NCBI GenBank assembly: GCA_048013815.1
Contig: CM106585.1
Coordinates: forward strand, 6,014,001 to 6,078,000
Reading direction: 5' to 3'
Source of the DNA: Setoptus koraiensis
Taxonomy: Eukaryota > Animalia > Arthropoda
Length of the DNA stretch: 64,000 nt
Positions within the stretch are counted from its first letter, which is position 1; every line of letters starts with the position of its first letter. The position numbers and the translations under genes were made by a program. This document shows, piece by piece, positions 5,191 to 63,000 of the stretch. The notes below the pieces were generated by a model. That model was not told the origin of the DNA, did not search any database, and was given only the letters and a program-made list of their open reading frames with translations.

Positions 5191-5801
5191 GCCATCAATA
5201 AGCGCACTTACCGACACATCCGCTCAGGTATCGTTGGAGCGGCCGGCTTGATGCTCGCCCGCCGGAGCGGCTGGCGTTCTCGCTGCCAAAAAGTTGCCAA
5301 GAGGTTGCCAAGAAGCTGCCAAGACGCTGCCAAGAATTGCCAAGAGGCCGCTGGCGAGCACGCCGACAGCCGGGCGCCGCTGCGGACGGGCGGCGACCGT
5401 TCGTTGTCCGGAAGCGACGGGCGCGCGTTTGCGAGAATCAATTTAAACTCAAATGCTGCTGCCGTAATTCTGGCCGTACCTGTTCGCGAGCGCAACCTTG
5501 TATCGAGCGCAAGTCGGTGCAATCGTTGCGATACATAGTTGGCCACTCACGCGGGATATAAAGCTGCCATAAACTGGCAGCGCCAAATGCAGGCGCAAGT
5601 CACGCGCCCTGTCCGCCGGGCGTCCGTCGGGCCGCCGACTGGCGTGCGGTCGGCGGTGGCGCGCCAACGAGATTAACGGCCAGTCGCTGGCTCGTTACTC
5701 GTTACTGGTCGGCGCGGCCGTCTTGACGGGCCGATCGAGTTGTTCGCGTTTAAATGACGGCTCATTCGATTATGAGCCGCCGTTCGAGGGCGCCGTTCGA
5801 G
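5191..5801. repeat. Copy 1 of a dispersed ~600-bp direct repeat
   Basis: 19 substitutions plus one 11-nt unit indel relative to 10693-11292; a more diverged tail continues to about 5950. Confidence 0.95.
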
Positions 5802-8800
5802 AGCCCGTTCGAGAGCGTCGCTCGAGAGACAGGCAGAGAGAGGGGCGGCCGCTTCGCCCAGTCGGAGCGGCTCGAGTGGCGCAACAACTTTCGCCGGTCG
5901 GCCGGATCTGGCGCAACAACCGGCGGCGACTCGTTTGTCGCGGCTTGCGACACCCGACGGCGGCAAGTGTCACAAGTTTCGATTGTGAGTCGCCCGATTG
6001 ACACTCGCTGACACTCAGCCGACTGTTTGATTCTTTGCTCGCTGTTTCATTCTTCTTCGGCTTCTCATTCGACAACTCGACAATTCGACAATTCGCCGGC
6101 TTCTCATTCGACGATTCGACAGATCGCTGGCCTCGCTTGGCTCGGTGCGCAACACGCACACGCAAATCATCGCTCGCAGCAGCTCGCCAATGTCACTTGA
6201 CTTTAATTATCCGCGCCGCATTTAATCAACTTTACATCTGGCTTTATCTGGCTACGTCCAGTTATACGTAGTTGTGTCCAGTTATGGCCAGGTATGGCCA
6301 GTTATGTCTGGTGCACTTGTTAGTGTGCACCGTTCGTCAGTTAGCCTAGTTTGGCGCCACTTGGTTCGGTGTCAGTTAGCTCAGTGTCCGTTGGCTCAGT
6401 GTCGGCTAGCTCACCTGTCCAGGTGAGCGGTGCTCAGGTGAGGAGTGAGCGGGCTTAATATGGCCTGCGCATGCAATGTCATGTGACACACAGTAAGTGT
6501 GTGATTATGTAATTGTTTGGCGCGCGGCCATAACTTGCGCAATATCGATGTTGTGTTTATCACAAATTGTATTATCGAGCGCAAAACATACTGTCAGTGA
6601 GTTAGATAACGGCGACATAACGGGCCGGAGGTGTCATTAGCAGGCTCAATGTTGTTGTGCGCCATTGATTGCATAATAAATTGAATGCGTGCCATAAAGA
6701 CATAACTGGCTTATGTCCGGCCGTGAGCGTCATAAGCCGGCTCCATTGCTGGTCAGCCCCATCGCTCCATCGCTGGTCAGCTCCGTCGGTCAGCTCCGTC
6801 GGTCAGCTCCGTCGGTCAGCTCCGTCGGTCAGCTCCATCCAACGAGATAAACGAGCCAAGCGAGCCAAACGAGCCAAAGCGGTGAGAGTGTAAAAACATT
6901 GTCGATGATGAGTTATCGCGCGCTAAGCAGTGATAATCGGCCAGAGTGCAGCATCGTGCACTTGTCAATTTGCCGAGTCTTCGCCCGTCGGCGGGGCCTC
7001 AACAAATCGTTTGCGCGCCCTCGTGTCTCGTTGGCCGTTGGCTAACTGGCGGCTAACTGCCGGCTAACTGCGCCGCTCAGCCAACAGCCAACAACTGGTC
7101 AGGCTAGGCGTGCTCAAAAACAACAACAACGGCAACTGGATCATCATTGCCGTTATTGTTTATTGACTAACACGGCATATAAACAATGATTAAACGTTTG
7201 CTGTTCGCTGTCAACGCTGTCCAGTGTTGCCGCTGTTGGCCCCATTGTCGGGATCGTCGTTCGTTGTCGGGCTCGCCGCTGGCGTGTGTGTTCGGCCGGG
7301 CCGCGCCGGGCTCAAGCTGCGCCGCGCGAGCGCAGATAAGCGGGCCCCGAGACCAGGGACAGAGACAATTAATAATTGCAATCACGACCTCCCATCGGCA
7401 ACCATTGCCGATATGGGCCCGTCGCAAGCGCTCTCGACAAGCGATAACTGGACACAGCATTACTCACCACATTAGTCGAGCTCGAGTGGCCACACTGCGC
7501 GGGTATAGTGCGGGCAGCGCGGGCACAGCGTGCATAGCGGCATAGCGCGGGTATAATGGGGCTCCGGCCATGTATACGCAACTAGCTGCATGGACGACTG
7601 GCTGCGTAGACAACTGGCCATTCACACGGCCAGTGTGGTCAGTACATGCAAGTTGTATATAAAAGTTGTGTATACAAGTGGCGCCCATAAGTGGCGTACA
7701 TAAGTCGCGCATACAAGCGCAAAAGTTGCGTAAGAAAGTTGCATAAGTCGTATGTATGAGCTGCGTGCACGGGCCGGGACGGGCTATAAAATATGTGTGT
7801 CATGTGACACATATCGGCTCGGGCCGGCCGAATGGCACAAATGGTGTGGGGGCAAACAAATGGCAAACAACGGTCGAGCATGACGCCAAGACATTTGGCG
7901 CGCCCGTGGCTGGCCCGCAGCGAGCCAAATGGCGCCGACAAACAGGGCCCAAGTTGGCAAATTCGCGAACTCGCGAATTCGCGAACTCGTGAATTCGCGA
8001 ATCCGTGAATTCGTGAATTCGCAGCCGAGCGGGCCTCTCGACGGCCCGATCGCGGGCTCCCATCGCGGCCTAGCAGCGGCCTAGCGGAGGCCTCGCAGCG
8101 GCCGGACGAGAGCGGACGGGAATGGCACAAAGGGCGACGAGTGAGACAAAGGCCACGGTGCGTCATCTCGGCGCTGGTAGGTGCGGGTTGTTCAATATTC
8201 ATAGAGCCATTAGGCCGCCTAACGGTGTCAATATTTATGATGATGCTCCGAGCGGCTCCCCGACGCACATATATCATTTGCCGGGGTACGTGGCGGGCTG
8301 GCCGGCTGGCTGGCTGGCGTCTTGGGCGGCCCGCTGTCCGGTTGTGCGTGCGGATGGCGCGCGGACGCTGCGCGCATCCGGCACAGCGGAGAGTAAATTA
8401 GCAAAAGTCGGCGTGGCGCGGGCCCGGCGAGCGGCAGCCAGCGAGCGACGGACGGAGGGGGCAATGGTGGCCAGAAGTCAATAAGTCGAAAGGGGCGCTC
8501 GAAAGCGCGCAAAACAGCGCAAAACTGCGCAAAAGCGGGCAAAATTGCGGCAAACGGCACAGCGGTGATTGTTATTATTGTTCATAATCATGTTTGCGGG
8601 AGCCACAGTGAGAGCGGCAGCGAAATGTTCACATTGGAAGCTGCAAAGTATAACTCGATTATTGCATGTGTCCGCCAACGGCAGCCACAATGAGCCAGCC
8701 GTTACGATCAATTTGCATATTAAACAAGCTCACGGCTCTTGCAAGCCCGGCGACGGCCACAAGTCAGTTACGCAATGTGATGCGCCGTGTCGTGTTAGCC

Positions 8801-10692: not shown

Positions 10693-11292
10693 GCCATCAA
10701 TAACCGCACTTACCGACACATCCGCACAGGTACCGTTGGGGCGGCCGGCTTGATGCTCGCCCGCCGGGGCGGCTGGCGTTCTCGCTGCCAAGAAGTTGTC
10801 GAGAAGCTGCCAAGAAGCTGCCAAGAATTGCCAAGAGGCTGCTGGCGAGCACGCCGACAGCCGGGCGCCGCTGCGGACGGGCGGCGACCGTTCGTTGTCC
10901 GGAAGCGACGGGCGCGCGTTTGCGAGAATCAATTTAAACTCAAATGCTGCTGCCGTAATTCTGACCGTACCTGTTCGCGAGCGCAACCTTGTATCGAGCG
11001 CAAGTCGGTGCAATCGTTGGGATACATAGTTGGCCACTCACTCGGGATATAAAGCTGCCATAAACTGGCAGCGCCGACTGCAGGCGCAAGTCACGCGCCC
11101 TGTCCGCCGGGCGTCCGTCCGGCCGCCGATAGGCGTGCGGTCGGCGGTGGCGCGCCAACGAGATTAACGGCCAGTCGCTGGCTCGTTACTCGTTACTGGT
11201 CGGCGCGGCCGTCTTGACGGGCCGATCGAGTTGTTCGCGTTTAAATGACGGCTCATTCGATTATGAGCCGTCGTTCGAGGGCGCCGTTCGAG
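10693..11292. repeat. Copy 2 of a dispersed ~600-bp direct repeat
   Basis: About 97% identical to 5191-5801; diverged tail to about 11415. Confidence 0.95.
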
Positions 11293-11479
11293 GCGGAGGG
11301 AGCCGCTCCGCCCAGTCGGAGCACCGCAAGTGGCGCAACAACTTTCGCCGGTCAACCAAGGCGCAACAACCGAAGGCGAGAGCGAGGCCCCTCGTTTGTC
11401 GCAACTTGTGACACCAGGTCGCCCAAAGTCGCACAACAATCTAGTCACAAGTTGCTCGCATCACAGGTTGTTTACTTAC

Positions 11480-16248: not shown

Positions 16249-18348
16249 ATGAAGGTGACCCACACACGCTTGACACTATTATTGTCATTAATTCAGGTTT
16301 ATCTCGTATCAAGCTCATCATGCGAAGATCAAGACCACCATGGCTCAAATGAGGATAAGCCCGTTCAATTAGTGATGCCCGACCAGCAGCACAAGGGACT
16401 CAAAATAGTTGAATCCAACTTGAAATATTTGCGAGCCCTTGAGGGCCCTGTTGCTGTGGTCGGTGTTGTTGGAAAGTTCCACTCCGGCAAATCGTTTCTC
16501 ATGAATCAATTGATGGGCAAATCGAACGGATTCGGTATTGGTCCCTCTGTTCAACCAAAGACAATGGGCATTTGGATGTGGGGCAAACCATTAACACTGC
16601 ACCTTGATAAAATTGATCAAAAGGTCAACTTGATATTTTTAGACACAGAAGGATTTGCTGCCAACAATGTCACCGAAAGGTACGACGCCAAGGTGTTTGC
16701 CGTCTCCACTTTGCTCAGTTCGCATCTATTATACAACTCAGTCAAAATCATAGATCAGTCCGATATTGAGTACCTGGAACTATTGGCTCGTCGCACTCAA
16801 TTATTTGCTCTCAGATCTCAGATGTCAAAGAGCAAATGGACCTCGGATTTCAATCAGGATCTATTGACCTTCCCGCCACTCACCTGGGTAGTGCAAGACT
16901 TCGTTCAGGAGACACAAAACAAGGAAACCCCTACAGAATGGTTACATAGGCTAATGGGCAGCCATTCGCGCGAAAGTGATAATTATACTATTAGTTTGTT
17001 AGACATATTTGAGCGTGTTGACTGTCACACTCTGTTCATACCCGCCTTCCGCAAGGACCTACTCATGGATATGTCGCAAGCAAGCGATGAAGACTTAAGC
17101 AAAGAATACAGATGGGAAAGGGACGAATTGAAGAGAAAATTACTCAAATCTATCGTGCCTAAAGAGAAAAACGATCAGTTTATAACTGGTTCAGATTTGG
17201 CACGCTTAATGCAGGTTCTTGTGACGGCCGCTAACGATGGCTCACTAGCTGATGTTCCAAGTCGGTGGGACTCATTTGTTGACCGTCTTCAAGTTACTGC
17301 TTCGCTGGATTGTGCAAAATTTTACCAGATGGAACTCGACAATTTCCTCCAGGATAAAAACGAACCCGTTAGTATGAGGGCTTTCGAGTTGTTCCACAGT
17401 CAAATAAAAGCAAGAGCTGACGAATTGCTCAAGCAACTGCTCCATGGTTTAGAAGATGCGTTAGCTAGCGCCCAACGCGATCTGGATACCAGAAGGGACA
17501 TGTATTATACTAGTATGCGAGATTTAAACGAGAAAAAAATCAAGGCGAAACTTACCTTAATCGGCCAAACCTTATTGAAGGACTTTGAAGATGCTATAAG
17601 ACCAGATAGCAAGAAGATTCCTCGAAGACCTGAGCTTCTTAACAATTTAATCGATCAAGTGATGAAGAATAGTCTTGAGGAGTTCGTTATTAAGACAGTT
17701 CAATTCAAGGATGAAAGTACATATTCTCAGTCGATTGAGCGTTTTAAAGAGGAGCTTACAGTTAGTAGTGAAAAAACGATAAAAGACAACGAACAAATAG
17801 CTGACAATCTCATATCAAAAACGCGCGCGGAAAGTCTAAGAAAATTCACTGATAGGATTAGCGCAAAATTCATAACATTACCAATCAATGAGGACACCCT
17901 GACACAACGTCTAACTCTTGAGGCCAACAAAGCTTTAGAAGATTTCAATGGACAGTTTGGAGATTATAAGGACTGTTGCAACTTTAAAACACATGTAAGT
18001 CAGTTGACCAAATCGATAGAAGAGGCTGGTCGAAGCAAACAGACCGACAACATTAAAGCCTACAAAGAGATAGTCGATGATGTTTTGACTAAGGCTAAGG
18101 ACCTTATCAAGCTATCTCAGGATAAATATAACACTGTATTTAGCTTGAACAAATTTGTTAACGACGTTTGCAATAGCTTATTATCGGAAGGGAGATCCCG
18201 ATCGTGGACACCTGATCTTAAACGCAAAGTTATAGACGAATTCATGGCTCAGGATCCTGAGATAAAGCAACTCATAGATTCAAAGCAAGGCCTATTCTCT
18301 ACAATCTTAGGTATTCTAGAGTGGTTGTGCTCTTTGATAGGTTTGTGA
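16249..18348 (+). CDS. Guanylate-binding protein (GBP/atlastin superfamily GTPase) with N-terminal signal peptide, 699 aa
   Basis: G1 GKFHSGKS, switch KTMGIWMW, G3 LDTEG, LLSSHLLYNS, WVVQDF, long helical C-terminal region. Hydrophobic N-terminus MKVTHTRLTLLLSLIQVYLVSSSSC. Confidence 0.85.
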   Translation: MKVTHTRLTLLLSLIQVYLVSSSSCEDQDHHGSNEDKPVQLVMPDQQHKGLKIVESNLKYLRALEGPVAVVGVVGKFHSGKSFLMNQLMGKSNGFGIGPSVQPKTMGIWMWGKPLTLHLDKIDQKVNLIFLDTEGFAANNVTERYDAKVFAVSTLLSSHLLYNSVKIIDQSDIEYLELLARRTQLFALRSQMSKSKWTSDFNQDLLTFPPLTWVVQDFVQETQNKETPTEWLHRLMGSHSRESDNYTISLLDIFERVDCHTLFIPAFRKDLLMDMSQASDEDLSKEYRWERDELKRKLLKSIVPKEKNDQFITGSDLARLMQVLVTAANDGSLADVPSRWDSFVDRLQVTASLDCAKFYQMELDNFLQDKNEPVSMRAFELFHSQIKARADELLKQLLHGLEDALASAQRDLDTRRDMYYTSMRDLNEKKIKAKLTLIGQTLLKDFEDAIRPDSKKIPRRPELLNNLIDQVMKNSLEEFVIKTVQFKDESTYSQSIERFKEELTVSSEKTIKDNEQIADNLISKTRAESLRKFTDRISAKFITLPINEDTLTQRLTLEANKALEDFNGQFGDYKDCCNFKTHVSQLTKSIEEAGRSKQTDNIKAYKEIVDDVLTKAKDLIKLSQDKYNTVFSLNKFVNDVCNSLLSEGRSRSWTPDLKRKVIDEFMAQDPEIKQLIDSKQGLFSTILGILEWLCSLIGL

Positions 18349-18905
18349 AGTTCAGCATTCATATTGTTTGTAAATAGACTCATACCCACATTATAATTTT
18401 TTTTTCGTACATTAAAAACTCTTTACCGCACTAGCGCTACAATAAAACTCTTATGTCAGTGTCGGCAGACACAATCATATGTTCATTTCGAAAGAAACCT
18501 GTTTGTTGTTGCTTTTACTTACGGAGCCGGTTTTGCAGGGTCGATAAGCATGGCACCACATATGCACTTGTAATACGAATCGTATTGTAAGATCGTGGAG
18601 TAGGTGAGCTGTCGTCTATCCATTCAATAGTTCATTATGTTGTATTATATAATATCAATTTAACTACGTAGCAATATAAAGATCTCTGATTGGAGAAATA
18701 AAGAAATAGCTTATCGACGTATTATCTTACAACAGTAGAACAAAGACTCGCACAGATTCAAAATGAGAGCGAAAGGGTAAACAACTATTACATTTACGGC
18801 ACCACTTGTTAGATTAGATGAATCGGTATAATCTCATTCATTTCAAGAAAAAAATTATTATTGTTTGTTGAGTTTGTAAGGAAGAAACCAAGAAACCTCA
18901 TCATC

Positions 18906-21077
18906 ATGACCATCTGTTTGATGTCGCTGCACCAGTGTAAAACTAATCTATCCAGGATTAGCAAGAAGAGATGCTTGAAACTGTCCCCCGTTCAAAATCA
19001 CCCCGTCAGATCAATATTTGCACCCGCTTCTGGATACAATATATCAACACTAAGAAATGGATCGACTATATATTACAACAGTGAACAGCTCAAATGGGCC
19101 AGAACAAGAAGTATCACAGGCAACAAACAAGACAGTTTGTATGGATATTCTTTAAAGCGATGCGCCGGTACAAGTGCCCAGCCACGGCCTTACATGGACC
19201 CCACTTATAGCTACATGTTTGGAAAATCTAACGGGCATCTCGTATACAAGAACATTGGTCAAATGTTGGACGAAAATGTTCAACGATGGCCCGACAAAAT
19301 GGTGTTTGCCAATCCAGTTGAGGGCATCGAACGTACCTACACTCAGCTAAATGAGGATACAAATAGGGTCATTAAGGCAATGATAACATTGTTGAATATT
19401 TCGAAAGGCGATTGTGTTGGTATATACTCTTATAACTGTTACAATTGGCTAATATTACAAATGGCCTGCAATAAAATTGGTGCCGTATTGACGCCAATAA
19501 ATCCATCGTACAAAGTTGACGAACTTAGTTACATACTGAAGAAGGGCCGGGTCAAAACGCTTTTTTTGCCTGGTCCACGATCGGATCAAGCTCAATTAAA
19601 TAATCATTTGGATGTGTTAAATGATCAGAGCATTCGAGAAGATATGGACAATTTAAAATTAGAGAGTGTAGTATTAATGGACGACTATGATTACGAGATA
19701 GAAAACGATAACAGATTGCCATTCAAGCAATACAACAGCAATAGTAACAATCTCAATCAAGGCAATACCAGGTTTAAAATTAATCACAAGCTCAATAAAG
19801 TGCAAATGATGAATTGGAATTACTTTTTTGATAATGACGGCATACTGACAGACGGAAACCTGTCTGACGTGGACGAACGCCAGCAATCAAACAATAGCAT
19901 TTGTCTATTCAATAGTACCAACGTTAGTCCAGATGACGTTTTTGGAATTTATTACACTTCCGGTACAACAGGTCGACCTAAGGGGGCCGTTGTTAGTCAG
20001 TTTACTGCGTTAAACAATGCGATTAGCTGTCACCACAGGCTATTTAATGCATTCTCTAAGGAAATTATCAATTGTTCGCCATTGCCCATGTTTCACATAT
20101 TTGCGGGGATATTGGTCGGTCTCACTATAGTGGGCAATCCAAACGGAACCACTATTGTTTTCCCGGGGCATAGGTACAGTATTAAGAAAATGGCGGAGAC
20201 AATGGAGAAATACAATTGCAATCTATTGACTTGTACGCCCACCATGTTGATTGATTTATTGAGTCATGTAGAACAATCCGGAGTACAATTACCGCTGAAA
20301 ATGATTCAAGTTGGCGGAGCGCCGCTACTCACTGAAGTGTTCAAGAAGGCCTTAAAGCTATTGCCCCATTTAGAGGATGTCAGATTGGGCTACGGATCAA
20401 CGGAAAACGGCGGTGTGTCAACAATACAATCAGTGTTTGAGCCAACGGAAACTAAACCATATACAGTGGGTCCACCAATTAGTTTTACTGAAGTACTGGT
20501 GGTCGATACGAAAACAAGGAAGCCCGTTGAGCACGGAAAAGACGGCGAAGTGCTAACTAGGGGCCCCAATACCATGACAGAGTATCTTGATGATCCAGTT
20601 AAAACTAACGAGGTTATAACGCAATCAAGATGGTACAAAACGGGCGACATTGGACGCTTGTTGCCGCATGGCAGCTTACAAATAGTTGGCCGAATAAAAG
20701 AATTAATAATAAAGGGCGGTGAAAATATCTACCCGAAAGAAGTGGAACAACTATTGTTGAGACACGAATCTGTGGAGGACGCGCATGTTATTGGAGTGCC
20801 CAGCAAGCGATACGGCGAAGAAGTTTGCGCTTGGGTGAAATTAAAGCCGGGCTTCGTTGAGGCCAACAAACAGGAAACAAACAGCAATAACAAAGATACA
20901 GTTGTCACTAATGAGCAGATTATCAAATTTTGCCGCGACAACATAACCTATTTCAAGGTGCCAAAATACGTTTTGTTTGTGGATACGTTCCCCATGACAC
21001 CCACGAAGAAAGCCCAACATCACATAATGAGGGACGAGTCCATAAAGATACTGGGCCTCCAGAATGAAATGGCATAA
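18906..21077 (+). CDS. ACSF2: Medium-chain acyl-CoA ligase ACSF2-like (AMP-binding family), first in-frame ATG at 18906
   Basis: YYTSGTTGRPKG AMP-binding motif, GYGSTE, WYKTGDIG, GRIKELIIKGGENIYPKEVE, FKVPKYV. Basic N-terminus compatible with a mitochondrial presequence. Confidence 0.8.
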   Translation: MTICLMSLHQCKTNLSRISKKRCLKLSPVQNHPVRSIFAPASGYNISTLRNGSTIYYNSEQLKWARTRSITGNKQDSLYGYSLKRCAGTSAQPRPYMDPTYSYMFGKSNGHLVYKNIGQMLDENVQRWPDKMVFANPVEGIERTYTQLNEDTNRVIKAMITLLNISKGDCVGIYSYNCYNWLILQMACNKIGAVLTPINPSYKVDELSYILKKGRVKTLFLPGPRSDQAQLNNHLDVLNDQSIREDMDNLKLESVVLMDDYDYEIENDNRLPFKQYNSNSNNLNQGNTRFKINHKLNKVQMMNWNYFFDNDGILTDGNLSDVDERQQSNNSICLFNSTNVSPDDVFGIYYTSGTTGRPKGAVVSQFTALNNAISCHHRLFNAFSKEIINCSPLPMFHIFAGILVGLTIVGNPNGTTIVFPGHRYSIKKMAETMEKYNCNLLTCTPTMLIDLLSHVEQSGVQLPLKMIQVGGAPLLTEVFKKALKLLPHLEDVRLGYGSTENGGVSTIQSVFEPTETKPYTVGPPISFTEVLVVDTKTRKPVEHGKDGEVLTRGPNTMTEYLDDPVKTNEVITQSRWYKTGDIGRLLPHGSLQIVGRIKELIIKGGENIYPKEVEQLLLRHESVEDAHVIGVPSKRYGEEVCAWVKLKPGFVEANKQETNSNNKDTVVTNEQIIKFCRDNITYFKVPKYVLFVDTFPMTPTKKAQHHIMRDESIKILGLQNEMA

Positions 21078-35038: not shown

Positions 35039-37601
35039 CTAGGCTATATAAAGTGCGCCCGACGGGGCCGCTCCGCCGTAACCGGACGGGGCCGCGCCGC
35101 CGTAACTGGACGGGGCCGGTGCGTAGCTGGATGGGGCCGGCGAGTAGCTGGATGGGGCCGGCGCGTAGCTTGACGAGCTTGTTTTGCGCATGCCGTACTC
35201 GGGAACGGGCGACGCGTTGCTGCCGTACACCGACGGCTGATATGGGCCGTAAGTGGGCGCGGAAAGCGGTGCGGCGCCGTAGCTTGCCGCGCCGGTCGGG
35301 TACATTTGTTGGTTGGCGCGATAGACGGGCGGCTTGTTGTAATTGCTCGATTGGGCATTGTTCGAGACGCTGGCGTAGCCGCTGAGCGCCGGCGAATTGT
35401 AGTTGCTACTGCCACCGGCCAGATATTTGGCCGATTGACCGTAGCCCGAGCTTGACGCCGCCTGACCGTAACCAGATGCCGGCAGGGCACTGCCGTAGCT
35501 CATGGCCGGCCCGCTGCCCGCGTAGTTGCTGCTCGACGAACCGGCAGCGTACGGTATCGACGCAGAGGGGGCGGAGTAGCCGCCGCTCGCTTGCTGGGCC
35601 GCGTAACCGGTTGATGCCGACGATGGTCCGCTGTACGACGGTGCCGAGTCGTAAGAGGGTGCCGCACCGTACGATGGTCCAGACGAGGGCGCCGAGTAGC
35701 CGCCCGCCGATCCCAGTGAGGCGTCACCGTAGCCGCCGCTCGAAGCTCCGTATCCGCTCGATCCGCCGCTAGATGATCCGTATCCGCCGCTCGATCCTCC
35801 GCTCGAGGCTCCGTATCCGCCACTCGAGGCTCCGTATCCGCTCGATCCGCCGCTCAAGGCTCCGTATCCGCCCGATCCGCCGCTCGAGGATCCGTACCCG
35901 CCGCTTGAAGCTCCGTATCCGCTCGATCCGCCGCTCGAGGCTCCGTATCCGCTCGATCCGCCGCTCGAGGATCCGTATCCGCTCGATCCGCCGCTCGGTG
36001 ATCCGTATCCGCTCGATCCGCCGCTTGGGGATCCGTATCCGCCGCTCGAAGCGCCGTATCCGCCGCTCGAGGCCCCGTATCCGCCTGAGCTGTAAGAGCT
36101 GCCGTCGGGGTGAGATGAAGTGTACGAGTTGCTGGCGCCGTACGAGCTGCCAGCCTTGGGTGGGTTACTGGACATGGACAGGTGAGTTGCGCCGTCGTAG
36201 TTGTCGTTTGTGGCGGTCAAAAGTGTCTGGCCAGGCTCTGCAAGTGATCGTATCGGGAATTGTCGACGGGTCGAATCGGGATTCACCGGTGAATATAGAG
36301 AAGAGATAATTAGCGATGAAAAGAAACACACAAACTCTAATTATGATTATGTAATAGCCATCGAGCCAAGGGACTCACCTAGCGGAGCGTAAGACGATGG
36401 CGAATTGGCGCCCTGGTAGCCGCCTTCACTGCCGCTTCCGTAGCTGGCGCTTCCGGCGCCCCCGTAAGAGGAACCGCTGGCTTGGCCGCCGTACGACGAC
36501 GAGTCCGACGAGTAGCCGCTCGATTCGCCGCCTCCGTATCCCGAGCTTGCGCCCGCTCCGTAGCCTCCCGCTGATTGGCCGTATCCTCCCGAACTTGAGT
36601 CACCACCGTAGCCGCCCTTTCCGCCGCCGTGACCGGCCGCTCGGCTGCCCTCTGGTCCGGGCAATTTGCTGCTGGAATCCAATTGAATCTCTGGCACAAA
36701 TATTGTCATCGGTTTGTGTGGTTGGCGCACCTTGGCCTTGATAGTTATCTTGGGCATGTTCATTTTGGGCATGTGAATCTTCATGGCGGGTATGTGCACG
36801 CCCAGATTGAGCTTAATACGGGGCCGGGGCGCACCGCCGTGGCCCGAACCTCCGCCGTAGCCGCCGCCGTAGCCGCCCTGCTCGCCTCCGTCGCCGCCGC
36901 CGTAGGCCGCCTCTGGGCCGGCATACGACGATGGCGCGGCCTCGTAGCCGGCCGACCCAGCGGCGGCACCCTGATCGTAGCCGCCCCCGCCGCCGCCACC
37001 CGACGGTCCATATGAGGGCGACGAGTGGACGTAGCCGAGGGTGAGGGCAATCACGAGAACGGCCAACGGGCACAGGCATGTGAATTCAATCTGGTTACAC
37101 AATTACACAGTGACGTAATAATGGCGACACAATCATAGTTACGTAATAATGGTGACACAATCATAGTTGCGCAATAATAGTGACACACAACAATAGTGTG
37201 CGGTTGTTTAAATGTAGGTGAGATAAGTGAGTGTGTCGCGTGCATTAATTGTATCACTCGATGGGGTCAGTAGGGCCAACAGAACGCGCGCACAGCCGAC
37301 CAACAAAGACAGGTGAATGAACAGGCGACACGGAGCCCACTTCCGGTCGACGGATACACTGGCCGAAGTTGGCATATCGAACGATTAGCGATTATCTAAT
37401 ATTGCATAATCCGTGATGAGTTGCCAGTGTTTAATCCTTACTTCCGGTTGGTTTGGGGTTCGCGTGTGTGTGTCACTCAAAATGGTGACAGTTTTCGGCC
37501 GGCTAACGAGCGCAAACTGTTCTGTTGGCCCCAAACATCGCGTTGAGTATGCAAGCTGGTGCAACAACAACAACAAGTGCTGACTGCGAACTTACCTTCA
37601 T
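35039..37601 (-). CDS. Secreted Gly/Ser/Tyr/Ala-rich repetitive structural protein (cuticle/silk-like), about 638 aa. Exons 37601-37596, 37090-36379, 36237-35039
   Basis: ATGAAG|GTAAGT micro-exon joins in phase 0 to AACCAG|ATT and completes a signal peptide (MKIEFTCLCPLAVLVIALTLGYVHS). CTAG|GTGAGT at 36378 joins in phase 1 to TTGCAG|AG at 36238 after an AG-free tract, fusing ORFs 36347-37102 and 35039-36331. GGSSGYGASS repeats. Confidence 0.8.
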
Positions 37602-38169
37602 GTTGGCTAATGGTGTAATGGCCGCTTGCGGTCTAACGGTTTAAATTAGATGGTTAATTAAATCACAGTCGATCAAACAATGTGTGTGTGTCAAATCAAT
37701 AAATATAAATACTTCCCTCTGTGTGTGTTGGTGGCTATGGTCGTGCTGGCCGGCGTAATGTGAGTCGTAATCTGGAAACAAAGTCGAGCGCATCGAGAGG
37801 AGGGGAGGGCGAGAAGATTTTCGAGGGTGAGATGGCTTGTCGCGATGATAACAGAGATAGAGCGATTGGGCGCGCTCGAAACCGGCCCGATTTTCGTCTT
37901 GGGCCGAATGTTCTGGCCGGAACAGTTCGGCCCGAACAGTTGAAGTTGCTGGTGGTCACAAGCTGGCCAAGACGGCGCTGGCAGATCAGAAATATTTGGG
38001 GCCCACGCGGCGACTCTCAGCCGACTGAGTTGGGCACTGATCGCGGGCAATGTTGCTCGAATATTGGTTGCAATATGCACATCGTGTTGCGTTGCAGCGT
38101 CACTCGTGGCGCCGGCGCTCTGGCCGAGTTCTGGCCGATGGTCAGCAGATTGCGGCCAGACGCCAACAA

Positions 38170-52600: not shown

Positions 52601-54968
52601 ATGAGAGCTGCTAATTAGGGCGGCCACAATTGCAATTGTTGGGCCGCCGCCGTGGCGTAACAATCGCGGTGCAGCGCCCCCAAAGAGCGCCCCCAAAGAG
52701 CGCCCCCAAAGAGCGCCCGGTTCGCGCGGCTCGGTATTTATGTGATGCACCATGTTGTTTATGTGTTGTGGTCTCGCTCGGTGCGACATGATTTACTGTA
52801 ATGTGATTTGCCCTAATGCGATTTAGCCTAATGCGATTCAATTAGGCGCAATTTGATGAACGGCGACGACGAGTCGTGGGCGGCCGCCGCTCGAGTCTCG
52901 AGTCGGGCCGACTCGAGACTCGATTGGGCCGACTCGAGTCGAGCCGCAACAGTGGCCGGCTTGAGAGTTTGCCGTTCGGGCACCACTTTTCAGCGACACT
53001 CTCTCGGCGTGCTCACCTGTTGTTTTGTCAACTCGCTGCCTGTGTTCGCTGCCTGATCGCTGGCTGTTCGCCGGCTGCGTTCGTTTCGCTGGCGGTGTCC
53101 GGCCAACGCAGCGAGTGTGAGCGTCGTCGGCTGGCCGAATGTCCGAAGTAGCCGAAGTGGCCGAATGTTCGAACGGTCGAATTGTATGAATGGCCCATAG
53201 AAATGGCCGGTGATTCACTGCATGTTTGGGCAGCTCGACGAGCCCGGCGAGCTCGACTGTGCCGCGACACTGCAAACGATCGCAGCGCCGACGATCGCGC
53301 TGCAAGCGATCGCAACGCAAACGAACGGCAACGACGGCGCACGCTGGCCAACAGCGAACTGACAACCGACTTGTGAGCAGGGGCAGTTTAATTTGCAGTT
53401 TAGCGGCCGAGCCCCACGCCAACAAGCAAACGGCGAAGCGTTCGCAAGCCGGCGCTGATTATAATTAATTGTTGCCTCATATGTCATGACCTCATCAGCG
53501 CATAATAGCAATAATAATGTTATATAATGTTAGCCGGTTGCCGGTGTGCTCTACTGGCGTTGCGTGCGTTATGTGTGTGTGTGTGTGTCCAGGCGTGATC
53601 GTATCTCCTTGGCACATACCGTGTATATCCGACGGCGGCGAGTTGCAGGTGTATCGGCGGCGCAAAGTATCGAGACGGGGTGGCAGCGACAAGTGCAACA
53701 ACCAGTGCGCCAACCGGCCAGCCAGTGACACAGACCACACAGGTGAGCGCAGCCAACGATTAATTAGAAGCTCATTAACGAGCTGTGCTGTGCTGTCGCT
53801 GTTGTTTGTTGTGTCGGCGTTTGTGGCTCGACTTGCGCTGTTGGTCGACAGTATAACACCGGCATGTTGGTGTTAGCATTGAACTTGCGTCGTGTCGCCA
53901 TCGTTGCAGCTCGCCTGACGGCGGCTTGTCGGGCGGCGCTCAGGTGAGTGCGCGCTGTGCGGTGTCAGTTTGTTGCCGGTTCCTGTTTGTCGATGTTTGT
54001 CCGGCGGCCACTCAACGCATCTGGCCACTGTTGGCAGCTCACCGGCAACAACTCGCGAGCCCGTCGCAGTGGCCAAGATGCTCGCTTCGACTATCTTGCG
54101 CTGAATATCGCCAATAAATCATCGCTGCGCCGTGCTGTTGGCTTGTCACTGGCTTGCGACCAGTGACAGTGGCGCGACGTAACTGTTCACGTGGGCCGCC
54201 GCTGACCAGCGCCAGTTGCCGCTGACCAGCGCTGGTGCCACTGAGCGCCGCCAGTGGTCAACACGTCGCACGCTCGGCACACCGACAATCAATCCGACAG
54301 TAACTGTTGAACGGTTTGTGTGTGTGCCTTGACGTTCTTGCGTTTGACCATCAGCTGCTCGGCGCTGGCAACAGCTGACGGCCGGCAACAGCTGACGGCC
54401 GGCAACAGCTGACGGCTGCATGACAGCTGACAGTGTGGCATACGTGTGACATACGCGACTGATGCCGTAATATCTACAGGTAGCTTGACGTTGTGAGCGC
54501 TATGCTGGCAAGACGCAATTAAGAAATGTGCTGTCGATTTATATGATGACAGTATTGATTTTGCCATTGATGATGGCCGTGCCCCCATCCGCAGCGCGTC
54601 CCGAAGGTTGACAACCGCTGGTCGCTTGCCACAATGCAGGCAGGGCAAGTGGGCCGTAACTGGGCCAAAATGGTTGCTCTGACAACCAGTGTGAGGGACG
54701 AGTTAATGCGTGCGATGTGTATGTTCATAATGTTGTATTGGTGCTGGAGTCGAGTGAAATTGTCGTGTCGCCAACACGATGTTTGTCGCTGATCTTGTGG
54801 CTTCGAGTCGATCTTTCGGCTTGTGTAGCTGCACTGTTGGGGCTTGGTCGGCCCATCGACTGTCCAATAAACAAACAAAGCTCTGGCCGGTGCTTCGAAT
54901 GTCACACAGAAGAATTCGCGTTTAGCGCGCAAGTAAACCGCTCTGGCGCCAGTTCACTCAAGTGCTCA

Positions 54969-55081
54969 ACTTACCTTCTTTAGGTGCCCCTTTGAGGTTC
55001 CTATGCAAGCAAATGTGCGCTGATTTTTGTTGATTGTTGTTGCTGTTGCTGCTGAGATTAAATTTGCGTTGACATAACTGA
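54969..55081 (-). pseudogene. Inverted copy of the 3' end of the Plexin-B exon, including its 5' splice site
   Basis: Reverse complement aligns to 59913-60022 (about 95/110, one 3-nt indel) and ends GGGCACCTAAAGAAG|GTAAGT exactly as in the gene. Confidence 0.92.
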
Positions 55082-56490
55082 CTGGCCAATGGCTGTTGTA
55101 TTAGGTGGTGGATAAATCGATATAGCGCCGTTATGCATAGAAAAAAATTACTTTCATTTCGCTAATTTGTTGTGCTGTTGCTCGCTTGAGTGGTAAACAT
55201 CGAATGAAAGAGAAAGCGAAAACGAAAACGAAAGCGAATCAGGTACGCAAAGGATGATTAAAAATGAAGCGCTAAAAATAGATAGATAGATAGATTGAAA
55301 TTATAATTAAATTAAATAACTATGCGAGCAGATGCGAATGACCTGGAATTAGGTAAATAGAACAGTCAGGTCATTCTTATGCATTGCTATGTTGCTGTCT
55401 TGATAACTTGTACAATCTGCACACACTTTGGCTGGGCAATTCTGAATGACAACAAGCATTAGCGACCATTGTGCCATTGGCAAATAAATACACTGATACT
55501 GATGTAACTTTCTTATCTCCCACCTAGACAACACTTACACTTACACACTCTTTAGCGCATTTAGTGCGCCGTTTACCCTTTCCCCGCCAATCTTGACCAC
55601 ACACACACGCACACACACCACACACACACACACACTCTTTGGCAATCCCCAAACCAATCAAGCCGCTCATGAGCCGCGCCCCTTCTCTCCCACTTGAGCA
55701 TGTCCATCATGTCGCTTCGGTAGAAGATATACCACAGTCAGTGGATGTGCCCACTCCGAAATCGTTTAGCCAAATTGGCATGCGGAAGACAGTTAGAATG
55801 TGTTAGAAGATGTGCCAGGGGAAAGAAGCAATTATTATTACATCACAGCAATTAAATCATAGCAATTAGAGCGATGCGAGAATAAACGAATGTCAACATT
55901 GGTCCCATCTGTCAGTGCTCGTGAAAATCGATTGTCCGTTGGTGATGCCCATTAGGCTCGCACGAAACAGTGTTGTCAGTGTTGATAATAGTTGGCCAAC
56001 ATTCAAAGAGTTGCACTCGCCTTGGATTCTCTGGATACATGGTTGGTCGACTGGAGTTTCAATACCGTCTATTGAATACAACCAGCAACTTTCAGACTCT
56101 TGTGATGCACATGAGGCCCGAGAATAGTCCCCCGTGTTGCAGGGATCACCCATCCCTGAGATCTTATTGTCGCCCTGTCAGGGCGGTAGTATTAATTATT
56201 ATTATTAATAGATGGCGATTTGTGCCAACAGTTCGTGTCGCTCGAGGCCGCTCAGGCAAAGCAGCGCCTGATTGCTGAAGAGCCACTCAATGATGTCTGT
56301 CTACTCATTGATCAACTTGTTGAACGTACACTGTAATTTAAACAATCTTTGTTCGGCGCTTATCAAATTAGATGGAGACGATCTCGCTCAATTGGGAGTG
56401 CAAACTAAACATACCAATCAATTATTTTTAAATACTAACCTATAATATATTCATTCTACGATCTATCATTATTTCATCATCATAGTTTGA

Positions 56491-56830
56491 CTAGACCGGC
56501 CATTGCCACTGACTGGAGGGTGCCTGCTGCACAAGAGGTTCCCAGAGCTTATGTTTGGCCATCGTGTGAACTAATTCCAGCTCGTCTCGAGCGTGCTCAA
56601 TCAGTTCTTCATTCCGAAAATCCAGCTTTTTCTCGATCTCTCGCGGATCCGTTGTAGTTTCAACTACATTCATCCTATGCTTGGTAATTGACGCACTGTG
56701 TCGCTTGTAGACAGATTCATCGGGTAATTTCGACAGAGCAAGATCAATTTTATTGCATGCTTCCAATGGTTCTCTTTGTGGATCGACTACAACAGCCAAG
56801 CCACAATCCGGTTGTCGTTTTGGTAGCCAT
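56491..56830 (-). CDS. NDUFA5: NADH dehydrogenase 1 alpha subcomplex subunit 5, with an apparent 1-nt frame discontinuity at about 56803
   Basis: C-terminus EELIEHARDELELVHTMAKHKLWEPLVQQAPSSQWQWPV matches NDUFA5 (KLWEPLVEEPPADQWKWPI). The N-terminal MATKTTTGL (cf. KKTTGLVGLAV) from the ATG at 56830 is out of frame with GLAVVVDP. Confidence 0.85.
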
Positions 56831-57012
56831 GATAATGATTTAAATATGACAATTATAACAAATACAGGGAATTACGTGAATCGCCGGTTGTTTCGAATTT
56901 CGATTGGAGTGGCGTTTATCAATAATTTCTGTTGCTGGAATCAGTTGAGGTGTAAAGAGGCGACTCTCTCTCTCTCCCTCCCGTGGTCTTTGCAATTGAC
57001 GATCAAGTGATG

Positions 57013-57293
57013 CTCTGTTGGTTGAGAATAGACCAATTGAGACGCGTTCGTTGGTTTCAATAAATTTGGTCCGGTTTCTAGAGATCGTACACCAATGGCG
57101 GTCACGAGATCTCACAGCGTCCTTGAATGTGTGAGCGCGATCAATGACGACAACCTTGTTGACGTTTGTTGTCAGCTTCATACTGTCCTCGAAGGCTTCG
57201 AGTCAAAGCTCTCGCAATGCACGATCACCTGATGCTCGAGCCTGGAGTTCGAGTTCCACCGGTGAAGCACATTTCAGGCGCCCAGGTGCAGCG
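57013..57293 (-). pseudogene. Inverted mosaic of four Plexin-B exon fragments
   Basis: Reverse complements: 57223-57293 ~ 58818-58888 (55/71); 57131-57191 ~ 58942-59002 (55/61); 57055-57111 ~ 59219-59275 (54/57, including 34 nt perfect); 57013-57055 ~ 59633-59675 (40/43). Confidence 0.92.
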
Positions 57294-58321
57294 TGAACCG
57301 GGTCTAACCAGTGTTACCAGAGTCTAACCAGAGCAAAATGGTTGAGCTCGTGAAAATTGACGAGCACGCTTGTTTGCCGCGAACGGTCGCTGCATGGGCA
57401 TTCGGTGCATGCTGCATGCACCAAAAGCTCATGCACCGACTTTTGGAGTTTGGGGTGAAAGATTTTGCACCGCGTTGCAGCGACTCAGGATTCCTGAGTC
57501 AGGATGGACGCGGCGACGAAAACCCCGTTGAGTCGGCGCGCTGAGTCTGCAGTTTTGTGCAGTGTGCGCGTTGCGGCGCCACTGGAGTTCAGTGGTGAGT
57601 GAACACACTGAAACACTCACAGCGACTGAATACACTGGCGCACACACAGGCCTGCACAGAACTGCTGGCCTGGCTTGCGTGGCTTCGGCCAGTCTGAGCC
57701 TGAGTCGGCTCAAGTTGGTTTGGCGGCGGCGGCGGCGGCGGACGCGCACGGCGTGAGCAACGCCAGTAGAGCAGTGTGTGCGCTCATTCGGCATTTGGAT
57801 CGCAAACGATCAACACGCACACACACACACACACACTCATTGCGAGTGACTCACATGAAAACGCAACAATCAACGCGCGCCGTGTAACGTTCGATCAGCG
57901 ACAATTAGTGCTCAAAGTTGTACAGTTTGCAGCGAACAAATCGCGCACCGATCGAATTGTGTCTACACATTGTTTCTGTATCCGTCTGTAGCGTTGGCCA
58001 GTCAGTCAACTGGCGAAGACAAAAGAAGAAAAAAGAAGAGAAGAAGAAAAGTTCGCCCGTTCAGTTCATCGCAAGCTAATCGCGCAACAAAGTGTCAACA
58101 TCGACTCGTGATCACATCGATTGCGAGTGTCATCGATAGCGCGGTTGCAGTTCGCCTCCGGCAACACGTGCCCCACGCATGCAGCTCAATAGCTCACATG
58201 ACGACATAGGCAAGATCATCATCGCCATTATCATTATTATTTTATTACACAATTATTATCATAATTATAATTATAATTAATTACTCATCACGCAAACATC
58301 AGCGCACACACATCAAGCGCA

Positions 58322-60016
58322 ATGACAAGGCCGGACTTTCTGAGGCCGCCCCGACGACGACGCCGAAAATGGTGGCCGACAGCGGCGCTTTTATTGATAT
58401 CGATGCTGACGCTGGGCGCCCGGTGCCTCGGCGCCGACCAGCAGCACTCCAGCAGCGAGGCCACCCGTTCCACTAGCAGCAACAACAACAAATTATTAGC
58501 CAATCTCTCCACTGTGATATCATCGTCATCATCATCATCATCATCATCAACTAACCGACTGACCGCAGACATGCTGCTGGCCTCTCAATCGCCCGTGATC
58601 CAAAACCAAATGCATAGTTCCTCTCAGCAAACGGCCAACGGCAGCTCGCACAACAACAACGCCGGGCCCACACCGGCCACCGCCACCCTGTTAACCAGCA
58701 ACAACAACAACAACAACATTGTTATCAACAACAACATCAAGCCAATTGTGGCCTCATTCGCCACCCCCAACCAGACCATAAACTTCACGCATGTCACCTA
58801 CGACCGGGACACGGGCTCGCTGTACCTGGGCGCCTCAAACGTGCTTTACCAGCTCGATGCCAATCTCAGGCTCGAGCATCAGGTTATCACGGGACCCGTG
58901 TGGGACAGTCCGTCGTGCAGCATCATCGATTGCAAGGGCTACGAGGACAGCATGAAGCTAACAACAAACGTCAACAAAGTTCTAGTCATTGATCACGCTC
59001 ACCAATCACTCCTGGCTTGCGGCTCCACACGACAGGGCGCTTGCCGGCGCCACCATTTGCACAACATTACGCAAAAAGAGGATCTCATACCCATGGCCGT
59101 GGCAGCAAACGACGACAATGCCTCCACGGTGGCCTTCATCGGGCCAGCTCGTTACAGTGACAATCAAGCCCCACAACAAGTGCTATATGTTGCCGTCACC
59201 AATTCTAGGCCGCCGCGTGATCTCGTGCCCGCCATTGGTACACGATCTCTAGAAACCGGACCAAATTTATTGAAATTATATGAGAATTCATTTGCTGACG
59301 CGCGAATAGATATTGATTCGCCATTGAGAGATTATTTTCTAGTTAACTATATCTATGGCTTTGCGACAACAAACTACATTTATTTTGCCACAGTTCAAAA
59401 GCGGGCAGTGGAGAGAAAATTCGAAGAAATGGGCTATCATACACGATTGGCCAGAGTTTGTGTCTCTGATGCCTCATACAATTCATACACCGAAGTTGAT
59501 CTCAAATGCGCCACAAACTCAACACTCACTGGCAGGCCATCCATTGAGTATCCATTGCTGCAAGACGCCATTGTTGTTGATGCCGGCCATCACATGTTGT
59601 CATCAATGATAAAAGATGCATCGTTTGATTCTACCAACGAACGCGTCTTAATTGGTCTGTTCTCAACAAACAGAGACCATACAGCACAAGCTGGTGATAA
59701 TTCTGCAATTTGCATTTTTCCATTATCATACATAGAAAATAAATTCACCGATAACATTCACAATTGTTATACTGGCAAGACTGAATCAAGAAATATGGGA
59801 TATATTGCTGGCAATGTTGCCGAATGTCCAAAATCAGCGGGCAATGTAGTCAACTTTTGTTCTGAAACTCTCAAGATCAATGGCTCAGTTCCAATAATAC
59901 AGTCACCAGCAATCAGCTATGTCAACACCACTTTAACCTCTATCACAGCAACAACAATCAACCAAAATCAGCACACAGTTGCTTTCATAGGAACCTCTAA
60001 CGGGCACCTAAAGAAG
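58322..60016 (+). CDS. PlexB: Plexin-B, first coding exon (signal peptide, Asn/Ser linker, Sema domain); gene continues beyond the window
   Basis: Sema-domain motifs LYLGASNVLYQL, NVNKVLVID, LLACGSTRQGAC, DYFLVNYIYGF, GYHTRLARVC..DASYNSYTEV resemble insect PlexB. Exon ends GHLKK at AAG|GTAAGT (60016/60017). Confidence 0.88.
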
Positions 60017-63000
60017 GTAAGTCAAACAATCTCCATTGTTTTTATACTGTCTTTCTACCATTGTTCATGCGGACGAGATACCTGAAAGGTCGGGGTCCTG
60101 AATTGGCCGTCATTGTCAGAATAGTAACTAGAATCTATAATAACTCTATTGAGCTTATGATTAGTTCTACAAGTATCGCCATGAATTGTTATCGCGCAGT
60201 TTTTTTTTCAAATACGAAAAATAATATGGGTGTCAGTTTACTGACAAATATACAATGATGAACCACCTCACAGAAGAATCAGAGAGCACAACCACTAGGT
60301 AATCCAAAATTGTAGACACAGGCCTCGCATTAACTCGGAGTCGATTCACCCCAGAATCCTCATATCTATGCGTCCACGGTCCTTGGCTGCTGCCCCTCTA
60401 AGCCATTCAGAGATTCACAATAGTTGGTGTCTCAGTCGTTGTGTGTCGCATCCACTGTATACATATCTTGTATGATAGCTTATCACCATAAATATCTTCA
60501 ATGCTCCAACTAATGAGCTGTTGATTAAGAGATCATGTTTGTTGTTGTTTGTAATTCTTTGTCATTTGATGATCATTGATTTATGGTGATGATGACGATG
60601 ACGACGACAGCGGCATAGTCTGTTGTAGTCACATTGACATAGTTCAACTTAGCTAGTTTCTAAGTCACAAAGATCTGAGTGAATAAAAGCGCAAGAGGCT
60701 TGATTACGAACATAAAATAAGTTATTAACTGCTTAACATATCTTGTAATTGTAACTAATGAACAAACATATACTCATATCTTACTCCTGCGACTCTTGAG
60801 TGATGTATCTACATACATAAAATTGCTGTGATCATCATCACCCATATTAAAACTCATTAGTTGCCGCTTCGCTTGATATACAACGAGAGCGCTGAGTCCA
60901 GATTGTTAAGTATCAATTTACGTCACAAAATATGATTTTGATGATGGTGATAGTGGTGATGGTGTTTATGATGAATGGGCTTGACATGAGTAAGTTAGAA
61001 TCAGGAAAAGTTGATGACTGATGCCGTTGGACTCACCAAATACTTGTCATTCTTTCATAAGTTTTTCCATCCTAGCACTCACAGCTGACGCCACATTAGA
61101 GAAAGAGAGAGGAGGAGAGACAGAGAGATGAATGTTAGCAATTAAGAACGAATAGTTACTCTTATTTCTTATTACATAGCTCGCGATTTATTATTACCAC
61201 CAGCCAGCCTGCCAGCCTGCAAGCGAATGATGCGATTGCAACCAGAGCAAGATTAAACTGCAGTCAAGATTAGACACAACCGTTCGAGTGGGGCCTGTGA
61301 AAGAGAGCTGGTCGTCCTGAAGCAATGATACTATCTTGTGTTGTTGCTGTTGTTGTAGATGTTGTTATTGTTTATAATCTATCTGATAATAAGGTTATTT
61401 ATTAGAGAGACAGTCTCACTGTCCCGACACATTATTACTATATACAGATCCATTCAAGCGTTATGCCTCTAACGAATCCTTTCGCTTTCTGCAGGGATCC
61501 AGTCCTTTTATTGCCCACCATTGGTAGTATTAGCAATGATGATTCGTAATGCGATGAAAATTAGATGCGATTCGTGATTCTCGGATTGCATGAGGTTGGC
61601 TTTCGAAGATTGCAATAATATAAACAACGGATAGACTTATTAGTTCACACAATAGCCACCCACTCGCACAATTGGGGCTCATCTGTTTTCTCCAGAATGT
61701 AGTTAGTGTGGGTGGCCTCGATCATGCGCGCTCTATCGGTGCACTTACAGCGGTCTGTGCTCTATGTTGTATCGAATAGAGATCGAATATATAGTCTAAT
61801 TGGCTCATTTACGATGATTAATTAGCTAGTTTCACTCTTAGCCAGTCGAATTCTCATTCACATTTAGATCATGAGCAGATTATGTGAATGATTTAACTCG
61901 AATCAGCTTGATTTTCATTTCAATCGGAACTAGAATTCGACATGGCCGTTGAGCCGTATCATTTATTGTTCTGCAGCCAACGCAAATGAGATATATTCCA
62001 TCATTAGTTTGAACCTTTTTTTCTTGCTTTCAGTACAGTCTGATTGATTTGCAACCTCCCTACCATCACTATCATTAGTTGAGAATCAAATTAGGTTAAT
62101 CGCTGTGTAGAAGCGAATTGTATTTATTTAATTTCTACATTTGTATTTCGAGGTTTGGCAACAGCCATTGGCTGTAATCAATTCGTATTGCAATGCTGCA
62201 ATCACTGCCTGCTTAATTTTGATTGCAATTGAATGTAAAACTGCTGTTGACAATTTTATTCGCGCAGCCAAATAAAATGCCCAACTACTAAGCTGAATAT
62301 TAATTAAGTGTCTTGATTGGCGAGATTATAACGAATAGACATTATGCTAGTTCACATAAAATGCCGGCTTCTATGTCGGCTCTGTTGCTGCCTATGTGAG
62401 AGAGAGAGAGAGAGAGAGAACCTTGCCTCTACTATTGCCGACATAGATATATCAACATTGGCATCATCATTTAATGTGATTTTGATACTAGATATTATGG
62501 CCAGAAGCAATTAGATAGTATTTCCACAGGAGGAGACAGAAATCAATAGAAGCGGTTATTAAACTGATTAGCATACGCAAATTCGTTTGTGTGTAGCACC
62601 AAGCAATTATTGCCAGCGCACCTTGAACAATCCGGACAATAAACGGACTATGCAAAGTATAACTGAACGCTGATCTTCCGCATCGATCCGCTATCTTGTC
62701 TGCGAGAATTCTTGTTGAGAGTTCTCAACCAGATCCCAGTTGCACCTAGGCCCTTTGGCAGAGCTTGCAACGTTGAATGACCCCACAGTAGACAGCCTAC
62801 TTAATTTGTGATCGCTTACTGCTATTTCTTGCCAATCAGACTGTCGCTCCAATATCTATCTATTCACTTTATATTTGTGCAGTTGAATCTAGTTAGTTGT
62901 ATCGTCAAAATGTCGAGATATTTTGCATGTAAAACAATTTACAATTAATTAACTAGTGTGTTAATTGCAAATAGAATATCTTGCATATCGACGATACTTG

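Follow-up and report, generated by a model that had tools for sequence, protein, structure and literature searches.

An inverted and eroded copy of Plexin-B exon 1 whose splice donor ends the first exon of a neighbouring gene

About 1 kb upstream of the Plexin-B start codon lies a stretch of 281 nucleotides (57013-57293) that is complementary to parts of the gene's own first exon. Such an arrangement raises the question whether the stretch is a cis-antisense module through which the gene regulates itself, or the remnant of an inverted duplicate in decay. A sequence-only reading had proposed both. Here we analyse the locus within the window, by which we mean the whole 64-kb stretch of DNA (64,000 nucleotides), and with the help of sequencing runs that cover it. 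Our analysis favours decay for the greater part of the copy, and reveals a present use for one end of it.

Five colinear inverted blocks

A find-repeats search of 54-62 kb and a blastn of the 64-kb window against itself, with E-values of 1e-10 to 1e-21, bear out that 57013-57293 consists of colinear pieces of Plexin-B exon 1 in reverse complement. This exon comprises an ORF from the ATG at 58322 and ends at the donor AAG/GTAAGT at 60017/60018. A fifth colinear inverted block, at 54969-55084, belongs to the same copy and brings the total to five. The parent segment and the blocks are as follows.

Parent segment: 58818-60022 (+), 3' two-thirds of Plexin-B exon 1, Sema domain
Block 1: 57223-57293 (-), against 58818-58888, 77% ungapped and 83% with one 1-nt gap on each side, in-frame stop
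Block 2: 57124-57194 (-), against 58939-59008, 89%
Block 3: 57055-57134 (-), against 59196-59275, 88%, includes a 34-nt perfect run
Block 4: 57013-57055 (-), against 59633-59675, 93%
Block 5: 54969-55084 (-), against 59910-60022, 85%, E 1e-29, end of Plexin-B exon 1 plus GTAAGT

The first four matches are found where the earlier reading had placed them, but they are not four separate pieces, as blocks 1 and 2 form a single continuous alignment with a deletion of ~22 nt. Block 3 is likewise present, but extends 23 nt further than had been described. The 34-nt perfect run exists (59242-59275), and it is unremarkable because ~0.5 perfect runs of this length are expected, by simple arithmetic, across 364 aligned sites at 87% identity. 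The fold-back geometry also agrees with the earlier description, with a loop of 1524 nt between the inner arms that holds the Plexin-B ATG; such nesting arises automatically in any inverted copy with deletions. Blocks 1 to 5 carry 12/70, 7/64, 10/80, 3/43 and 14/107 differences, respectively, which sum to 46/364 (12.6% divergence), and the per-block divergence is statistically homogeneous and compatible with a single age. The five blocks are thus one eroded inverted copy of 58818-60022 and not a mosaic.

The homology of block 5 ends immediately 3' of the copied donor. Neither tblastn nor a relaxed blastn returned additional eroded plexin pieces beyond the five blocks, and short direct matches at ~54272-54530, which we considered as further pieces, were not significant in these searches. 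In a blastn of the whole window, the remaining inverted matches between separate places all involve the same plexin locus. The window also contains a 775-bp direct repeat with 87% identity (5191-5954 versus 10693-11415) in GC-rich non-coding DNA. Between the blocks and plexin lies a near-perfect local palindrome (57386-57440, 27-nt arms, 85%); runs X2 and X4 have a 12-nt insertion behind 57386, while the window and run X1 are without it.

A chimeric join or a collapsed repeat could produce a layout of this kind, and none of the contigs examined spans both arms. Run X2, which derives from another sample and another study, nevertheless contains 91% of the words sampled, and its depth on the blocks is that of a full single copy; contigs of X1 tile the joints without differences (56711-57084 and 57059-57237). 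At the level of contigs the locus is no artefact, and we attach next to no probability to an assembly error. A divergent, low-depth contig of X2 spans 57064-57317 with 28 differences (11%), no gaps and the same joints, at a depth of 16 versus ~135. Another low-depth contig of this run, on the non-coding flank (56162-56445), is 7.7% diverged, also without gaps, at a depth of 8 versus ~135. These contigs suggest that the sample contains a second haplotype or a related mite. The presence of the same joints in the diverged contig implies that the block arrangement is not very young and has not been further deleted. As far as two contigs can tell, the divergence of the blocks (11%) is not below that of the flank (7.7%), which speaks against special constraint on the blocks.

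A protein search with exon 1 identified mites and a tick as the best named plexin relatives, with identities of 46-52%, and returned nothing above 57% protein identity; the nearest plexin relatives found, at 52-58%, are without a copy. Two long metagenome contigs of distant relatives contain no inverted plexin self-copy, and within 10 kb they carry none of the genes for NDUFA5, GBP and acyl-CoA-synthetase. Metagenome contigs scanned for exact occurrences of the joint between blocks 3 and 4 gave no match.

Erosion of the copy and an inserted NDUFA5 duplicate

Relative to its parent, the copy has three internal deletions. The first, of ~22 nt, separates blocks 1 and 2 (57195-57222 against 58889-58938). 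The join of blocks 2 and 3 sits in the 8-nt direct repeat TCACCAAT, which the parent carries at both 58999 and 59196, as is characteristic of deletions between short repeats. Blocks 3 and 4 meet with a 1-nt overlap, at which 357 nt of the gene are absent. Beyond block 4, gene positions 59676-59909 are replaced in the copy by 1.9 kb of other DNA.

Frame loss accompanies these deletions. Blocks 1 and 3 contain in-frame stops (tblastn), block 5 contributes three further stops in the plexin frame, and in the sole long minus-strand ORF the frame of block 3 differs from that of blocks 2 and 4. A 113-residue minus-strand ORF (56840-57181), which starts with the plexin-derived MKLTTNVNK, was considered as a gene and rejected as a chance frame, having no Pfam match, no RNA cover and mixed plexin frames. 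The 46 differences are distributed over codon positions 1, 2 and 3 as 15, 12 and 19, with ~121 sites each, and such an even spread is expected if most changes arose in an unconstrained copy. The copy has no coding capacity.

The DNA between blocks 4 and 5 includes a copy of another gene.

Inserted segment with NDUFA5 copy: 55708-56874 (-), ATG at 56830, stop at 56491-56493, Pfam PF04716

The frame of this NDUFA5 copy breaks off nine codons downstream of the ATG. About 2 nt are lacking near 56805, where the conserved G-L-x-G-L-A-V stretch of NDUFA5 would need six letters and four are present. A second version of 55708-56874, about 90-91% identical, is present in DNA runs X1, X2 and X4 at a depth equal to that of the window version. 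Of the two, the RNA-like run X7 contains solely this other version; its record 29 differs from the window at 31 positions and by 2 gaps across 56516-56874. The NDUFA5 of the window is thus most likely a disabled duplicate inserted in the eroded plexin copy rather than a working gene, and the interval is no simple head-to-head NDUFA5/PlexB pair.

A second set of inverted sequences is located on the other side of the exon.

Inverted collapsed fragments: 60106-60360 (+), plexin intron 1, from an acyl-CoA-synthetase ORF (19754-19841) and the 3' end of a GBP ORF (18251-18418)

Here, 60106-60188 corresponds to 19754-19841 (score 52) and 60204-60360 to 18251-18418 (score 74), versus a shuffle maximum of 31, and the 1.3 kb between the acyl-CoA-synthetase and GBP fragments has collapsed to 15 nt. 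Similar erosion has therefore acted more than once at the plexin locus. The intron 1 fragments are colinear with the plexin blocks in a palindrome-like arrangement, and are ~28-30% diverged versus 12.6-13% in the blocks. One large palindromic duplication with reciprocal decay might lie behind both sets; although order and orientation fit such an event, we regard it as possible but rather doubtful because the divergences differ twofold.

A copied splice donor in a minus-strand neighbour

Only two runs, X7 and X8, are RNA-like. We took X7 as RNA because it contains exon-like parts only and a spliced joint; it is of low depth and consists of assembled contigs, which drop rare variants. Its record 25 (1331 nt, depth 37) corresponds to 54976-55191 with 0 differences and runs off this stretch at the GTAAGT donor of the copy. 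Of its next 30 letters, 29 match 37744-37772, which adjoins the acceptor ttccag/ATTACG on the minus strand. This RNA-like contig thus has a GT..AG joint that links the donor of block 5 to the acceptor at 37771, 17.2 kb away. The joint has one unexplained letter, X7 reading AAGAA-CG-ATTACG versus the AAGAAG-ATTACG predicted from the window, which may reflect variation between strains or an error in the contig. As the places at 54976 and 37771 share no repeat, we consider a graph chimera unlikely. By joining block 5 to the acceptor at 37771, the contig identifies the copied donor as the 3' boundary of the neighbouring gene's non-coding first exon. This gene is organized as follows.

Non-coding exon 1: 54975-55191 (-), ~220 nt, last 110 nt and donor plexin-derived (X7 record 25)
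Exon 2: 37596-37771 (-), acceptor ttccag/ATTACG, ATG AAG at 37601-37596, then GTAAGT
Downstream ORF: 36347-37102 (-), predicted signal peptide and Gly/Ser/Tyr-rich protein

The 5' end of exon 1 is taken from the end of the contig, and the true start may lie a few nucleotides further upstream. We infer that exon 2 is joined to an exon 3 that begins at 37090. Given its predicted signal peptide, the neighbour would encode a secreted Gly/Ser/Tyr-rich protein; this protein has no match in Pfam. Its first intron of 17.2 kb is GC-rich (55-63%), and the depth of the gene in X7 (37) is higher than that of NDUFA5 (15).

Of the whole copy, block 5 alone can be shown to be in use today. What is new at this locus is that a 5' splice site copied from plexin has been recruited by a minus-strand neighbour.

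Pairing, origin and known systems

Could the four blocks upstream of plexin act by pairing with its exon? One way in which they might do so is in cis, if the plexin pre-mRNA started upstream of 57013 and folded back into a duplex that serves as an ADAR or Dicer substrate or as a block to translation or splicing. If co-transcribed, the arms would pair: in a minimum free energy fold of 56990-59700, 240 of the 281 block nucleotides are modelled as paired with the exon on either strand. This pairing follows from the homology and is uninformative about function. A GTGAGT at 57595 could also be the donor of a non-coding exon further upstream. In X7, however, the plexin 5' UTR is observed from 58129 on, which is downstream of the blocks, as are two initiator-like motifs (TCAGT(T), 57589 and 58061). 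X7 has no contig on the four blocks and zero depth over 57061-57651, which is weak evidence because X7 covers plexin itself only in patches (58129-58318, 58742-59001) and could miss a rare transcript. The mismatches also speak against selection for pairing, since such selection predicts the reverse ratio: in plexin-sense RNA, the 21 transition mismatches would give 5 G:U and 16 A:C pairs, with 8.3 G:U expected by composition. Over 58742-59001 the X7 contig, which like all such contigs drops rare variants, differs from the DNA at a single position, a T>G at 58885; as X4 shares it, this is a polymorphism and not A>G editing. Finally, AGO2, R2D2 and an RNA-dependent RNA polymerase were not found in Aculops lycopersici, a gall mite (PMC7738191), and a canonical siRNA reading becomes less likely if the same is true here. 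The proposed cis-antisense autoregulatory module thus gains no support from the RNA, the mismatches or the position of the 5' UTR and initiator-like motifs, and we judge a fold-back of this type very improbable. A search of 37-62 kb against Rfam families gave no match. Two 28-nt elements (57920-57947 and 58059-58086, 71% alike), with the initiator-like sequences ACAGTT and TCAGTT, respectively, are candidate plexin starts upstream of the observed 5' UTR.

The blocks might instead act in trans, if antisense transcription of the exon or plus-strand read-through over the blocks gave rise to siRNA or antisense RNA directed at plexin. The minus strand is transcribed nearby, in the exon at 55191-54975, and endo-siRNAs derived from pseudogenes are known in other systems (PMC2708354, PMC3616710). 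On minus-strand RNA, 16 of the 21 transition mismatches would be G:U pairs. This 16:5 asymmetry, however, is no significant sign of pairing once the base skew of the sense strand (C>G, A>T) is corrected for (expected share 0.60, p = 0.18). Minus-strand RNA from the blocks would moreover be plexin-sense and unable to pair with the mRNA, the neighbour's exon seemingly starts at ~55191, far downstream of the blocks, and the blocks lack an X7 contig. We therefore consider dsRNA from both strands as improbable as the fold-back in cis. There is a slightly larger, though still slim, chance that low-level or cell-specific co-transcription or complementary transcription yields a duplex of ~250 bp that tunes Plexin-B by editing, dicing or translational block. 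For a regulatory duplex or antisense role in all its forms taken together we found no positive evidence, and we hold it to be improbable overall. Should such a duplex exist, an axon-guidance receptor would have an unusual means of regulating itself, through a hairpin made from its gene's own exon.

A decaying inverted duplicate, the other proposal of the earlier reading, fits all the tests that were run, namely frame loss, in-frame stops, even codon spread, a deletion at a direct repeat and the NDUFA5 insertion. The four blocks are probably a neutral relic of an eroded inverted pseudo-exon. We picture its history, in a tentative order of events, as follows. Either an inverted duplication at the locus or template switching during replication would have placed a copy of 58818-60022, including the 5' splice site, upstream of the gene, where it would have drifted without coding constraint. 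Three internal deletions would have cost it about two-thirds of its length, and a 1.9-kb insertion with the disabled NDUFA5 duplicate would have split it. Blocks 1-4 would be what remained between deletions, most likely with no function, and the copied GTAAGT donor of block 5 would have been taken over as the end of the neighbour's exon 1 and spliced over the 17.2-kb intron. The blocks and the NDUFA5 segment may also have arisen together in a single repair event with serial template switches (FoSTeS/MMBIR), in which case the blocks would still be a relic in functional terms. Short colinear inverted segments with microhomology at the joints (8 nt and 1 nt), the insertion of a segment from a second locus between the pieces, and the similar age of the plexin blocks (12.6%) and the NDUFA5 pair (~9%) are in line with such an origin. 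The gap between blocks 1 and 2, in contrast, is a small deletion in diverged sequence, like ordinary decay, and the joints flanking the 1.9-kb insert have no clear microhomology. On balance, a one-step origin seems unlikely. As a relic, the copy would be a well-resolved case of the decay of a local inverted duplicate in a small mite genome, and block 5 shows how a neighbouring gene can come to end its first exon at a surviving copied 5' splice site.

As in the hpRNA endo-siRNA loci of Drosophila and in young plant MIR genes, which arise by inverted duplication of their target genes (PMC10292708, PMC10317233), an inverted coding duplicate could in principle form a long duplex here. The hpRNA loci have both arms in one dedicated transcript, apart from the target, and produce abundant 21-22-nt RNAs. 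At the plexin locus, by contrast, one arm is the target's own exon and the other is without a transcript in X7. ADAR editing-complementary sequences are conserved elements that usually reside in the same pre-mRNA as the edited exon, in an intron next to it. The plexin blocks resemble them as complementary elements within a few kilobases of a coding exon, but lie upstream of every candidate start, and the little RNA examined (X7) has no A>G change. FoSTeS/MMBIR denotes complex rearrangement by replicative template switching, and shares with our locus short templated segments in inverted orientation, microhomology where they join and the inclusion of sequence from a second locus; stepwise deletion gives the same layout here. 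Decaying duplicate fragments are relics of unprocessed pseudogenes shortened by deletion, as in the 'DNA loss' of Drosophila. The plexin copy is like them in its nearby parent, its frame loss, its codon-independent substitutions and one deletion between short direct repeats, and differs in that it is inverted, lies 1-4 kb from its parent, is interrupted by a fragment of another gene and has one end in use as a splice donor. This last feature is reminiscent of chimeric 5' exons formed from duplicated gene fragments, in that a copied exon end and its donor are used by a neighbour on the opposite strand; in our case, however, plexin has contributed solely non-coding sequence and the donor, and the start site is in non-plexin DNA.
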